A stretch of DNA of 18,969 nucleotides from Bugula neritina. Taxonomy: Eukaryota; Animalia; Bryozoa. Of this stretch, positions 10,495 through 16,303 are shown piece after piece. A model generated the notes under the pieces. The model saw only the letters and a list, made by a program, of their open reading frames with translations, was not told the origin of the DNA and did not search any database. Every line of letters begins with the position of its first letter. Position 1 is the stretch's first letter. The stretch is from positions 1-18,969 of the forward strand of contig CAXIUT010000265.1 in NCBI GenBank assembly GCA_964035545.1, read 5' to 3'. Made by a program: the position numbers and the translations under genes.

Positions 10495-10687
10495 ATAAAT
10501 ATAAAAGTAATAGGATACAAAATCACAAAGAAATTAGATGATGGTTAGGATTGTGAGAAGATCAGAAGATTCTAAGTTGAATATTCAATACGACTGAATC
10601 GTTGATTGAGTACTCATGCGTCTTCTAAAGATGACTTAGTTCGTACGCTAAGGTTATTTCATAGTATACTTCTAAGGTTATATGAGA
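10495..10687. repeat. Outer inverted repeat, left arm (shared 3' end of the micro-exon genes)
   Basis: Reverse complement of ~16026-16216 with only a few substitutions or indels. Confidence 0.9.
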
Positions 10688-13380: not shown

Positions 13381-13477
13381 TGATCGAAATAAGAAGAGAA
13401 TTTCTTAATAGATGGTAATAGTTCAAAAATAAAAAGGAATACTTGATATTTATGGCATTTTAAATCCTTTTTACTTG

Positions 13478-14842
13478 AAAAAAACCCTATTTTTATCATT
13501 TTATTTTATGATTTATGACTTTTGTTACTTTAGAATATCTAAAACTTGACCTAGTAGGACATTAGCCTATTAAAATCTTGTTTATTTTTGAATAATTATG
13601 TTTAACAGGTATTTTAAAGCTAGAATATAGTGAACCGTAATCATAGTTCGTTTTAAGTGCCTTTAAAAGAGAAGTTTAAAGAAAAATGTTAAAACAAAAA
13701 TATATAAATAATCATTTTTAGAGTATTTTAACATTAAAGTAATCCTTAAAAGAGAATAATTAGAGTAATTTACTTTATTTTACGATTTATTTGTCATCTT
13801 TGGAATCTTTGAAACAAAAAAAAAATACCTAGTAGTACTTTAAGCTCTTCATAATCTTTAAATAAAGCTATAATACTAATTTTCTTGTATCCTTAAATCG
13901 AAATATTCTTAACCGCGTTCATGATTTTTTTCTTTTTCTTAATAGAGATTCTTTAATAGATGTTTTCAAATAAAAAATGGGAAAAAATCATTTAACAATT
14001 TTTTTCTGTCTTTAAAAGACACAGAAAGTAAGAATATTAAAAGAAAAAATACTACTTTTTGTTAAAATAAAAGTTTTTTCTAAATATTCCGGTGACTTAG
14101 CATTTAGTCAAAAGACTTATCTTCAAATATCTGAATACCAGAAGGCTTGTTTTGGTGTCTAAAGTAGATAAGTCTCTTCGAGAAGGTCTATCCGTCTTTC
14201 TTAAGGTTCTAATTGATTTTTTCTTCTCAATAATGGTTAAGTTCTTTATAAAATGCAAGTCATTTATGAAAAGAAAGCTATTGGCCTGTGTAGTTCTTTG
14301 GTTCAATTGTTTAAGCTTAACGTATAAGATGATAGAGTTAGAAACTCACAAAAAGAGCTCTTATAAACTCTGATAAAAATAAGGAGTTGAAATTAACACC
14401 TCAGACAATAATCTTTCAGCAAGTATTTCTTCACTTATTTTGGAATATATTTATCCTCCTTTTGAATCTTATGTCATCCATCAAACTTATCGCCCTTTTG
14501 GTCCTTATCGCCCTCGCCATGGGATTGAGGTATTATCTCTCTCAAAAAGCCTTGTAATATCGATTTTATTCAGAGTATCTTTTATCTAAAACTTAGAAGC
14601 TCACAGTAATTTCTTTATTTAAACAGACGTATACTTTCTTTTACTCCAGGGAGTAGTTTTTTTTCTATTCCAGGAAGCCGTACTATCTTTATCTACTCAG
14701 GCTGTACCTCATTTTTTATCATAGGGTATATCATAGCCCATCCTTAGATGTATTATTTCTCTCATCTCAGGGTACAGTTTCCCATAATGTCAGAAGTAAA
14801 TATTCCTTTACTTAAGGGTATCGACTTTTTTATTTAAGCTGC
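13478..14842. repeat. Inner inverted repeat, right arm (1365 bp)
   Basis: Mirror of 12016-13380. Contains ~990 bp of upstream DNA plus exons 1-13 of the micro-exon gene. Confidence 0.95.
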
Positions 14843-16099
14843 TGGTATATATCAAATAATTTTAGCCAGTATGAATTTAATAACCAAGATGTATGATATT
14901 TTTGATATTTAAGGGTATAAAATATGTTACTTTAGCCGGTATAATTTTTTATATTTTAGCCGGAGCCGTATGATTAGAATAATTGAAGGCAGCTCTCGGT
15001 ATGAGATCCTATAAAGCTAGCTGATGACGTATGATAGATGAGAAATTAGAGTATTGAAGGTTTGACTTAGATGCTGGTATTAATTAGATAAGAATAGATG
15101 GTATTATAAAAGTTATTTAGCCTAAGTATTAGTTATTTGAATATAGTGTACTAAAATAGTAATTGAAGTCGTTCTTTATTGACTAATTTCAGAGTTAAAA
15201 TAAACTTATTCAGAAGTATTTTATTTTCTACTAAGGGTTTTTTGTATTTTACTTAGTCGTAAATATCAAGTCTATTAAGTGTAAAACTATTGAAATTTTA
15301 GTTGACGAAACTGTTGATGCCGTAAAATTGTTAATTATTAAGAGTACTTAGTCAATAAAGATAGTCGTATTTATTAATTTAAACAAAGAGTATTCTATAT
15401 TTTATTTAGTTGCTGGCGTATTCTTTTAACAACAAAGGGTATATTATTATTTAGTTTTAGATTCTGACAAAGTATTTTTACTTCTAAGTGAGGCCGTATT
15501 TATATATCAAAAAAGAATGTATGATTAATTTTATTTAGGGTATATCTATTTTTGAGGAAGAAGTACTTATAAAATAACATCAGCTCGTCACAGTATATTT
15601 CAAAATAAGTCTAGGCTGTAACTTTATATTTATTTTAGAATGTGGACAGTATTGATTGATTTATCATAGCTGTCAGTATAAATTTATTGATTGAAGAGCG
15701 TATTAAATCAATCACAAAGCTGAAGTATTCATATTTCTATTAAGTTCCGTATTTGTTTTATCATATCAGTCCGTATTAAACCAATTATCTCAGAAAGTAT
15801 TCCCCTATTTACAGCAGAAAGTATAAATCATCTAAATGTAGTGAAAGTTTCATTTTGTTAATCAAGAGTATACTATCTTTAACCCAGAATGTATTAGTCT
15901 ATCTAATATAGTCGTCGTATATCATCTTTTAATTCAAGGGTATTGTCTTTGTCATTCAGCTGACCGTATTAAATCAATAACCCAGTCATCAGTATCAATC
16001 TTAGTCATCTTTAGAGGCTAGTAATTCTCATATAACCTTAGAAGTATACTATGAAATAACCTTAGCGTACGAACTAAGTCATCTTTAGAAGACGCATGA
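14471..16099 (+). CDS. Micro-exon gene A: 64 coding exons, 63 introns, secreted 102-aa protein
   Basis: Removing all ~20-23-nt GT..AG introns gives a 309-nt ORF: MSSIKLIALLVLIALAMGLSLKAHNGEAADEAAANAAGAAALADDNADA[TAA=E]FKVFDETVDAIIAGDSDKANELVTANVDTVKPEFLQKMKKFVADLIKAKQDA*. Mean intron length is (1629-309)/63 = 21.0 nt. Confidence 0.88.
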
Positions 16100-16216
16100 G
16101 TACTCAATCAACGATTCAGTCGTATTGAATATTCAACTTAGAACCTTCTGATCTTCTCACAATCCTAACCATCATCTAATTTCTTTGATTTTGTATCCTA
16201 TTATTTTTATATTTAT
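16026..16216. repeat. Outer inverted repeat, right arm
   Basis: Near-identical reverse complement of 10495-10687. Covers the last exons, the stop codon and the 3' UTR. Confidence 0.9.
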
Positions 16217-16303
16217 ATTAATTATCAATATCAATGATCAAATCTCTTAAAATAATAACAAAAAGATATGATTTAAAAAGAAATAAATAAGTAGAAAGTA
16301 AAA

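Follow-up and report, generated by a model that had tools for sequence, protein, structure and literature searches.

Structure of the locus

The window, that is, the whole stretch of 18,969 nucleotides analyzed here, carries a gene at positions 14471–16141 of the forward strand (gene A) whose coding sequence (CDS) is interrupted about once in every five coding letters. We parsed this region by dynamic programming, using a score that considers intron length (20–23 nt being favoured), the third base and the AT content, and that ignores the reading frame. The frame-blind parse resolved gene A into 65 GT..AG blocks of 20–23 nt each, 63 of which lie in the CDS and two in the 3′ untranslated region (3′UTR). 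Twenty of these blocks are 20 nt long, 32 are 21 nt, 11 are 22 nt and two are 23 nt. When the blocks are removed, the spliced CDS is 309 nt long including the stop codon, and it encodes a protein of 102 amino acids (aa) with a signal peptide. The intronic share of the CDS span is 1320 of 1629 nt (81%), and the density is 63 introns per 0.309 kb of CDS, or approximately 204 per kb. The internal exons measure 1–20 nt: 17 consist of a single nucleotide, 11 of two and 13 of three, and the other sizes are 4, 5, 6, 8, 9, 10, 11 and 20 nt. About two-thirds of the exons have a length that is not divisible by three, and there are runs in which 1-nt exons alternate with 2-nt exons. The numbers of CDS introns and of single-nucleotide exons, the lengths of the CDS and the protein, and the intronic share are exactly those given in the original prediction. 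The coordinates of the features are listed in Table 1.

Two naive parses of gene A, one based on maximum coverage and the other on the shortest AG, both broke the open reading frame (ORF) and were dropped; in other words, the length window matters for the parse. Given that this length prior enters the score, the rule of taking the earliest AG from 20 nt onward as the acceptor is in part built in, and the open frame and the codon usage serve as independent checks.

Table 1. Features of gene A and of its paralog, in coordinates of the window
Feature	Position	Strand	Basis
Paralog gene B: 69 CDS introns and two 3′UTR introns, 25 1-nt exons, 106 aa	10572–12387	-	Frame-blind parse; stop ends at 10614
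5′ constant block, arm of a perfect 1365-bp inverted repeat	13478–14842	+	blastn, 100% over 1365 bp against gene B 13380–12016
Minimum gene A transcript	14466–16176	+	RNA-run contigs at both ends, which are common to gene B
Exon 1: ATG, signal peptide, 59 nt, phase 2 at its end	14471–14529	+	Parse; 5′ contigs
CDS intron array: 63 introns and 62 micro-exons (1–20 nt)	14530–16088	+	Parse, shuffles, RNA contigs at the ends
1-nt exons (17 in total), first part	14574, 14725, 14771, 14817, 14914, 15050, 15147, 15193, 15236	+	Frame-blind parse
1-nt exons, second part	15280, 15343, 15389, 15438, 15539, 15867, 15939, 16066	+	Frame-blind parse
1-nt exon ‘a’, RNA-verified	14574	+	Loose end past 14529, CCTT-A-AAGCTCACA; third A impossible from the flanking exons
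1-nt exon ‘g’, RNA-verified	14725	+	Loose end ...GCT-G-A; without the exon it would read GCTAT
Variable cassette of gene A	14843–16025	+	DNA without similarity to the gene B cassette, 12015–10688
Longest internal exon, 20 nt	15302–15321	+	Frame-blind parse
3′ constant block	16026–16216	+	97.9% identity to gene B 10687–10495
1-nt exon ‘c’, RNA-verified	16066	+	X22 loose end before 16145, A-C-AAGACGCATGA-TC-AAT
Last coding exon; TGA stop at 16097–16099	16089–16099	+	Parse; in the X22 contig
Two 20-nt 3′UTR introns (16100–16119 and 16122–16141) with the 2-nt exon ‘tc’ between them	16100–16141	+	Both gone in the X22 contig

Gene B, the paralog on the opposite strand, has a CDS of 321 nt, and the two genes are built from constant ends and a variable middle. 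The 5′ constant block contains the promoter region, exon 1 and the first 13 introns of gene A, and the genome has only two copies of it, namely the arms at gene A and gene B. The proteins encoded by the two cassettes show only a distant likeness. We also conducted a pattern census of the genome, which gives a lower bound, and arrays of the same type were found on further contigs of the assembly. The architecture had been described as locus-specific in the original prediction; the ordinary genes are indeed intron-poor, but gene B and several other genes share the architecture. As a separate observation, L018 carries a second candidate micro-exon gene. Searches of the window against Rfam and for tRNA genes found no match and no tRNA, respectively.

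Host genome and genetic code

The contig is a complete macronuclear minichromosome, capped at its ends by C4A2 and G4T2 telomeres. It belongs to a ciliate in which the UAR codons are reassigned, and the assembly took in a much larger host genome as well. A tRNA with the anticodon CUA was found at L004:3981–4052. Position 12 of the EF-hand loop is almost always Glu, and L007 carries, from about nt 1860, an EF-hand gene with a UAR codon at this position, at one site. The peritrich nuclear code, in which UAA and UAG are read as glutamate, is a candidate for the code used here. The ciliate is probably a peritrich.

Coding evidence and chance controls

We generated 1000 dinucleotide shuffles of the gene A body, in which the parse found a mean of 19.9 introns and a maximum of 29, compared with 65 in the real sequence. 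The intronic fraction in the same shuffles was 25% (maximum 38%), compared with 81% in gene A, and other 1671-nt stretches of the contig gave a median of 12 blocks with the same parse. Shuffled controls had been proposed together with the original prediction, and the block count withstands them, whereas a stop-free ORF is not significant by itself, because TGA is the only stop codon here and the shuffles contain such frames with a mean of 98 codons.

The exons and introns of gene A differ in GC content (48% vs 25%), and we further analyzed the codon usage, taking the cathepsin L gene as an independent reference. The middle cassette scored +0.40 bits per codon in the predicted frame, compared with −1.3 and −1.5 in the other two frames and approximately −1.6 in the introns. 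The codons had previously been noted as preferred-looking; their usage is the same as in the cathepsin L gene, in the predicted frame only. In addition, the frame-blind parse led to an open frame in both gene A and gene B, and the same TGA ends both.

RNA evidence for splicing

Contigs from RNA runs were placed on gene A at 14466–14529 and 16145–16176 only, and no contig of the runs X17, X21, X22 and X23 was found on 14548–16131. X22 is on record as RNA-Seq, and the other three runs were typed as RNA by guess. All five 5′ contigs, with those of these four runs from four studies among them, end their match to the genome exactly at the first donor, 14529, and the loose ends of the contigs were read over 30 letters each. 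Past 14529, the X21 contig continues as CCTTAAAGCTCACAACGGAGAAGCCGCTGA, in exact agreement with the predicted join of exons 2–10 (nine junctions), and it is identical to gene A over 50 nt of exon 1 and 30 spliced nt. The contigs from X17, X22 and X23 show the same join of exons 2–10 with variants that are in frame and consist of substitutions only. At the other end, the X22 3′ contig reads ACAAGACGCATGATCAAT before 16145, as predicted for a transcript from which introns 62 and 63 and the two 3′UTR introns are removed. In total, 13 of the 65 junctions (the first nine and the last four) were directly seen in RNA-run contigs. The search for the spliced sequence among transcripts, which the original prediction had called for, was therefore successful at these 13 junctions, and they include the 1-nt exons at 14574, 14725 and 16066.

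All 13 junctions fall in the parts of gene A that are common to gene B; given that both ends are shared, the contigs cannot separate the two genes. In X22, the 5′ contig is a variant and the 3′ contig includes a gene-B-like letter. Splicing of the gene A cassette itself is supported by codon usage and reading frame, with the RNA junctions lying at the shared ends only.

We also examined whether the joined and the uncut forms occur elsewhere. Uncut genomic 31-mers were present at 28–99% in the runs X1–X6, which come from three studies and whose type is off record. A 30-nt spliced word, with up to three mismatches allowed, had no match in the 216-Mb assembly, so that no intronless copy was found there, and metagenome scans with two spliced words gave 0 matches.

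Intron signals

The 119 unique introns of genes A and B share a set of signals. GTA stands at the 5′ end in 96% of them, a pyrimidine at position 13 (Y13) in 89% and an A at position 15 (A15) in 91%. In all 119, the acceptor used is the earliest AG at a distance of 20 nt or more from the GT, and 31 nearer AGs are skipped. GT..AG ends were found in 65 of 65 introns of gene A and in 71 of 71 of gene B; this is partly a matter of how the parse is constructed, and the RNA junctions agree with it. After intron 1 there are no phase 2 introns at all, and the 1-nt exons are always at codon position 1. The highest pairwise similarity between introns was at the level of shuffled introns, a comparison of introns by lag found nothing, and Tandem Repeats Finder found no array.

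Ordinary introns are sparse in this genome: a plain histogram of GTA..TAG lengths over 194 kb showed no intron peak, and a weight-matrix scan gave only a small excess at 20 nt. A frame-rescue test was therefore needed. Among the frame-rescuing 20-nt candidates on other minichromosomes (194 kb), 11 of 21 carried both Y13 and A15, compared with a background of 18%, the sample being small.

The A15 in its pyrimidine context resembles a branch point and may serve as one, at a constant spacing from the 5′ end. Given that all conserved signals (GTA, Y13/A15 and the first AG) lie inside the intron, pure intron definition with sequential splicing would be the favoured mode of removal.

Interpretation of the array

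Based on these results, we propose that gene A is an expressed protein-coding gene on a ciliate minichromosome, with 63 mini-introns of spliceosomal type in its CDS and two in its 3′UTR, all removed by RNA splicing. We estimate the probability of this reading at about 0.88. Each intron would hold its own signals, namely a GTA(T) start, Y13, A15 and the earliest AG at 20 nt or more from the GT, and exons as short as one nucleotide would be possible because such recognition needs nothing from the exon. The signals point to the spliceosome as the agent that removes the blocks, and the 52 introns beyond the 13 observed junctions are presumably removed as well. Since two spliceosomes cannot sit side by side on sites 1–3 nt apart, adjacent introns would be removed in several rounds. 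Splicing would thereby produce an mRNA of about 0.35 kb, and translation a 102-aa precursor that comprises the signal peptide and a mature protein of about 81 aa. The mature protein is predicted to be acidic, Cys-free, Ala/Asp-rich and probably helical, and it is likely to be secreted.

We considered the possibility that an intronless paralog or retrocopy, carried by the ciliate strains of X17–X23, gave rise to the spliced-like contigs, and that the window locus is a silent, insertion-riddled relative. Such an origin would fit the sequence variants in X17, X22 and X23, and it gains some room from the fact that three of the four runs were typed as RNA by guess alone and that the check for the joined form covered the assembly. 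However, the assembly is without an intronless copy, the X21 contig is identical to gene A over its exon 1 and spliced letters alike, and X22 is a recorded RNA-Seq run. None of the four runs has a contig on the intron-bearing 1.6 kb, where ciliate DNA would give one. Moreover, although the two cassettes have diverged, their micro-exons still preserve the reading frame and the codon usage, unlike a dead locus. We therefore regard this origin as highly improbable. There is likewise little to recommend excision from RNA by a non-spliceosomal route, such as an endonuclease–ligase or a guide-RNA-directed system. The agent is deduced here from sequence signals, and sites 1 nt apart are hard to square with the footprints of spliceosomal particles; on the other hand, the GT-AG ends are invariant, the introns carry the GTA consensus and the branch-like Y13/A15, and the same signature recurs in the ordinary 20-nt introns that other genes of the ciliate carry. 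Moreover, ciliates splice introns of 15–25 nt with a normal set of snRNAs, according to PMC9505925.

The idea that the blocks are germline-type internal eliminated sequences (IES) cut from DNA, with the window representing unprocessed germline DNA, takes its appeal from the thousands of short gene segments that ciliates remove. It is effectively refuted, because the blocks stand on a telomere-to-telomere minichromosome, which is the somatic form, because the uncut form occurs in runs of three studies with up to 99% of words whereas the cut form is absent from the assembly, and because the blocks end in GT..AG and not in TA..TA. A chance or non-coding pattern of AT-rich DNA, such as a decayed tandem repeat of about 22 nt, was also considered. 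With TGA as the sole stop codon long open frames do arise randomly, and true tandem repeats can imitate chains of introns, as at L011:6447–6559. This explanation is refuted by the shuffles, which never came near the real block count, and by the junctions observed in RNA; the introns are also no more alike than shuffled ones and form no array that Tandem Repeats Finder detects.

Comparison with known systems

A literature search found no description of such an architecture and no gene described with a comparable interruption density. Nevertheless, several known systems share individual features with our proposed reading of gene A as a spliced gene. As in the recursive splicing of animals, splice sites nearly abut, which implies stepwise removal from the same stretch of RNA. 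Recursive sites split one long intron without leaving any exon letters, whereas each unit of gene A leaves 1–20 coding letters and no zero-length exon (an AG directly followed by GT) occurs, the minimum being 1 nt. The local, burst-like excess of introns resembles that of introners and other intron families that spread by copy-and-paste. Copies of an introner resemble each other, whereas the introns of genes A and B share no more sequence than shuffled controls.

The micro-exon genes (MEGs) of schistosomes, reportedly treated by DeMarco et al. in 2010, offer a closer parallel in overall design: they encode small proteins for secretion, the first exon holds the signal peptide, and many tiny exons make up the rest. 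The members of the family are conserved at their ends, whereas the middle evolves fast. Their micro-exons are 6–36 nt long, are multiples of three that can be skipped in frame, and are parted by ordinary long introns; alternative use of them generates protein variation. In contrast, the exons of gene A are mostly not multiples of three and many are 1–2 nt, its introns are 20–23 nt, and it belongs to an unrelated lineage. PMC11166329 and PMC8673669 also mention MEGs. Lone single-nucleotide exons have been described from Arabidopsis (PMC4674806), from CYP621A of Fusarium (PMC12940212) and from the mitochondrial cox1 of placozoans (PMC5436844). In these cases, as in ours, one nucleotide is correctly joined between two introns; however, they are isolated and occur once per gene, whereas there are 17 such exons in gene A and 25 in gene B, strung together with 2-nt exons.

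Tiny introns are common to several ciliates: they measure about 25 nt in Paramecium and 15–16 nt in Nyctotherus, Stentor and Blepharisma, and fall in narrow ranges in peritrichs (PMC2633312, PMC9505925 and PMC13685798). The introns of gene A resemble them in their GT-AG ends, very narrow length range, branch-like A at a fixed position and apparent intron definition. The difference lies in the density and in the exons. The highest genome-wide density reported for a living ciliate is 2.87 introns per kb of CDS (PMC13685798), and the value for gene A is about 70 times this figure. In addition, exons of 1–3 nt are the rule in gene A and not the exception.

Implications

If our interpretation of gene A as a spliced gene is true, it would redefine what the splicing machinery can handle, with 65 excisions per 1.7-kb transcript and runs of 1-nt and 2-nt exons. 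The gene would be a natural substrate for studying the minimum spacing of splice sites and the order in which neighbouring introns are removed. It also introduces a question of accuracy, given that the yield would be the 63rd power of the per-intron efficiency. Furthermore, gene finders may miss part of the secreted proteome in these ciliates, since such genes have no recognizable ORF in the DNA and spliced aligners cannot place 1-nt exons.

The total absence of one intron phase may be a clue to how the introns multiplied. A speculative view, which we think rather doubtful at present, is that, in this ciliate lineage, a class of secreted-protein genes keeps its hyper-fragmented build as a functional architecture and not by accident, with modules that vary codon by codon and isoforms that carry 7-aa in-frame insertions. 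Under a maintained architecture of this kind, genes would grow by modules of ‘intron + 1 nt + intron + 2 nt’, and such growth would explain both the zero count of phase 2 introns after intron 1 and the 1-nt exons at codon position 1. Stop-free introns of 21 nt, a multiple of three (3n), would let incomplete splicing add 7 aa in frame and would thereby give combinatorial secreted isoforms. The most frequent intron length in gene A is this 3n length of 21 nt, whereas the ordinary candidates in the same genome peak at 20 nt; 3n introns are rare in most ciliates outside the heterotrichs, according to PMC13685798.

Structure and coding status of gene A

Gene A begins with a signal-peptide exon, downstream of which AT-rich GT..AG blocks alternate without a break with very short, GC-richer spacers. 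We parsed the locus by dynamic programming with a score based on block length, third base and AT content, and with the reading frame ignored. This frame-blind parse yielded 65 blocks of 20-23 nt each, and the joined spacers formed an open frame of 102 codons, with two of the blocks lying beyond its TGA in the 3'UTR. The counts of the original prediction (63 introns within a 309-nt CDS, 17 exons of one nucleotide, and 81% of the CDS span intronic) were reproduced exactly. Two cruder parses failed, which shows that the narrow range of block lengths belongs to the locus itself.

Features of the 19-kb minichromosome and of other contigs in the 216-Mb assembly
Feature	Contig	Position	Strand or end	Basis or remark
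Gene A	C274 (window)	14471-16141	+	Parse
Exon 1 of gene A, ATG and hydrophobic signal peptide, 59 nt	C274	From 14471, first donor at 14529	+	Sequence, parse
Stop codon (TGA) of gene A	C274	16097-16099	+	Parse
Gene B, head to head with gene A	C274	12387-10572	-	Parse
Perfect 1365-bp inverted repeat	C274	12016-14842		97-bp spacer, 13381-13477
C4A2 telomere repeats	C274	1-62	Left end	Sequence
Short subtelomeric repeat, GAAATCATGAATCAT	C274	64-120		Inward of left telomere
G4T2 telomere repeats	C274	18880-18969	Right end	Sequence
Internal run of ~13 G4T2 repeats	C274	8617-8695		Mid-minichromosome
Uninterrupted cathepsin L-type protease with I29 propeptide	C274	7062-7988	-	Neighbour gene
GPR180/TMEM145-like membrane protein	C274	16553-16921	-	Neighbour gene
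Second signal-peptide gene with mini-introns	C270 (L018)	~640-1120	+
tRNA with anticodon CUA	L004	3981-4052	-
EF-hand gene	L007	From about 1860	+	UAR codon at loop position 12
Five head-to-tail copies of a 22-23-nt unit	L011	6447-6559	+	GT start, AG end
1-nt, 2-nt, 1-nt exon triplet, ciliate type	C147	61501-61549	-
1-nt, 2-nt, 1-nt exon triplet, ciliate type	C209	13943-13994	-
Six such triplets	C305	18851-24122	+

Dinucleotide shuffles (n=1000) reached ~20 blocks and 25% coverage on average, with maxima of 29 and 38%, against 65 blocks and 81% in gene A, and other stretches of the same contig gave a median of 12 blocks. The shuffle control suggested in the original prediction therefore set gene A apart by its blocks, but not by its open frame, which is little proof by itself because TGA is the sole stop codon and long frames come up in shuffled sequences too. 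The coding status of gene A is supported by its composition. GC content is 48% in exons and 25% in introns, and the codons, which had been described as preferred-looking, follow the same choice as those of the cathepsin L gene, which lacks introns and lies on the same chromosome (GC3 of 0.47 in both). In the variable middles of gene A and its paralog, gene B, the codon score was positive in the predicted frame only (+0.40 and +0.62 bits per codon, respectively), with values of -1.1 to -1.7 in other frames and about -1.6 in introns. The predicted protein A consists of a signal peptide of ~21 aa followed by ~81 aa, and its mature form has a pI of ~4.4, 21 Ala, 17 Asp+Glu, no Cys, one Pro, and amphipathic-helix windows close to the C-terminus. 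An in-frame TAA is present; residue 49 is Glu if the peritrich code holds.

Removal of the blocks from RNA

A 2-kb query of the gene A region against public runs matched no RNA run, as expected if the mRNA and the intron-filled DNA have no 31-mer in common. With exon 1 alone as the query, RNA-type runs carried 2-3 of 9 sampled words. Contigs from four such runs of four studies (X17, X21, X22 and X23, of which X22 is the only one recorded as RNA-Seq) were placed on positions 14350-16300. In every case, the match of the exon 1 contigs ended exactly at the predicted first donor. The next 30 letters in X21 were CCTTAAAGCTCACAACGGAGAAGCCGCTGA, the predicted join of exons 2-10, which takes in two 1-nt exons (14574 and 14725). 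Of the two possible acceptors of intron 3, which lie 3 nt apart, the nearer AG is the one used. The joins in X17, X22 and X23 were substitution-only variants, all in frame, presumably representing paralogs or orthologs from related strains. A second X22 contig matched 16145-16176 and was immediately preceded by ACAAGACGCATGATCAAT, in which one letter agrees with gene B. This is the join predicted once introns 62 and 63 of the CDS and both introns of the 3'UTR are removed, and it contains the 1-nt exon at 16066 as well as the stop codon. None of the RNA contigs from the four runs lay on 14548-16131, and the X23 contig ran for 255 more letters past exon 1, against 250 predicted up to the stop. 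Loose contig ends were seen for 30 letters each, and the spliced sequence that had been predicted was thereby verified at 13 junctions, all inside the parts common to A and B.

We also considered the possibility that the blocks are sequences eliminated from the DNA. However, the contig carries telomere repeats of C4A2 and G4T2 at its left and right ends and is therefore a somatic molecule, namely a complete 19-kb macronuclear minichromosome. In addition, 28-99% of the uncut 31-mers were present in six public runs from three studies (X1-X6), and a 30-nt spliced word had no match in the 216-Mb assembly with up to 3 mismatches. These observations rule out DNA elimination. Given that the blocks are on a somatic minichromosome and the joined form is in RNA, they are kept in the expressed DNA and taken out of the RNA. 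The internal G4T2 run has the polarity of the right-end telomere, and may mark a site of alternative fragmentation or the point at which two molecules were joined.

We propose that the entire 1.7-kb unit is transcribed, and that a normal spliceosome would pick out each intron singly via internal signals (intron definition). Since spliceosomal particles have an RNA footprint far larger than the 1-3 nt between sites, adjacent introns would not be engaged together, and removal would proceed in several rounds, in any order that holds neighbours apart. The yield of correct mRNA would be the per-intron efficiency to the 63rd power, which implies either very high efficiency or many imperfect products. 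No gene like A came up in our literature search, which returned tiny introns in ciliates, micro-exon genes in schistosomes and single-nucleotide exons as isolated cases. We class gene A as an extreme form of spliceosomal mini-introns and micro-exon genes. Within this one gene the density reaches about 204 introns per kb of CDS, whereas the highest genome-wide value reported for a living ciliate is 2.87 (PMC13685798).

Source organism and genetic code

The assembly consists mostly of large satellite-rich chromosomes (C1-C9), plus many small telomere-capped contigs (C255-C275 were sampled), among which the window falls. The large chromosomes are those of another organism and the ciliate is a co-assembled associate, and the species label of the assembly may not fit the window. 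The 3' half of the tRNA with anticodon CUA has what we take to be a Glu-like look. Position 12 of an EF-hand loop is normally glutamate, and is a UAR codon in the gene on L007. The tRNA and this codon point to UAR as Glu, the peritrich code, and the in-frame TAA of gene A is further evidence for a ciliate that uses it. The source is likely, although not proven, to be a peritrich.

Intron anatomy and phase

Among the 119 unique introns of A and B, lengths of 20, 21, 22 and 23 nt occur in 31, 63, 23 and 2 introns, respectively. GTA occupies positions 1-3 in 96%, T position 4 in 70%, a pyrimidine position 13 in 89%, and A position 15 in 91%. The branch-like A is at a fixed distance from the 5' end of the intron, not from the 3' end, and the acceptor used is the first AG at least 20 nt from the GT in 119/119, with 31 nearer AGs passed over. 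The unit is ruler-like: GTA is followed by 11 letters and Y-N-A, and the intron ends with the first AG that comes 5 or more letters later. Because all signals sit within the intron, exons can be as short as 1 nt. Introns are sparse in the ordinary genes of 194 kb from other minichromosomes; frame-rescuing candidates there are most commonly 20 nt long (n=21), and 11 of these 21 have Y13 and A15, against a background of 18%. This suggests that gene A contains the normal intron type of the genome at an abnormal density. The introns were no more alike than shuffled introns at any spacing, and no tandem repeat was found in the array. Copy-and-paste has not occurred here recently. The L011 units look like a chain of introns but form a genuine tandem repeat, which makes L011 a helpful negative example.

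Of the introns that follow intron 1 (phase 2) in gene A, 27 are in phase 0, 35 in phase 1 and none in phase 2 (14530-16088); the corresponding numbers after the first intron of gene B are 32, 36 and none (12328-10625). Single-nucleotide exons are always first codon positions, and 2-nt exons always positions 2-3. Avoidance of one phase by 62 introns has a p of about 1e-11, assuming equal phases and independent neighbouring introns. A published survey notes that later introns of peritrichs run counter to the pattern of Tetrahymena (PMC13685798), which we read as phase 1 favoured and phase 2 avoided; this may echo genes like A. A length of 21 nt, divisible by three, is found in half of the gene A introns, and about 90% of the 21-nt introns (28/32 in A, 37/39 in B) would bring in no in-frame TGA if retained. 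This is contrary to the usual avoidance of such introns in ciliates, 3n introns being reported as rare in most ciliates outside heterotrichs (PMC13685798). The array may have grown long ago, through duplication of modules of a codon and its introns or through gain at two sites allowed in each codon, and its longer exons would be the product of later intron losses.

The paralog and related genes

Gene B has 69 CDS introns and 2 in the 3'UTR, 25 one-nucleotide exons, and a product of 106 aa. The arms of the inverted repeat carry the promoter region, exon 1 and the first 13 introns of both genes, and a 3' block of 193 bp is common to them with 97.9% identity. Sequence comparison detected no DNA similarity between their middles. 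Nevertheless, the proteins can be aligned (56 identities in 110 columns, including a common C-terminal amphipathic stretch), with 41 intron sites in common and 50 differing. The 5' block was found in the window contig only in a search of the assembly. Recent gene conversion may explain why, in the assembled sequence, a perfect repeat lies beside cassettes that have diverged completely.

The architecture had been considered locus-specific. This agrees with the scarcity of introns in ordinary genes, but not with its occurrence elsewhere. In the signal-peptide gene on C270, the first exon is directly followed by 8 or more mini-introns with 1-nt exons, and these by an acidic Ser/Ala-rich repeat. 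This structure is provisional, since in our parse a TGA falls into the frame that the ATG opens. The exon triplets on C147, C209 and C305 likewise point to further candidate hyper-fragmented genes.
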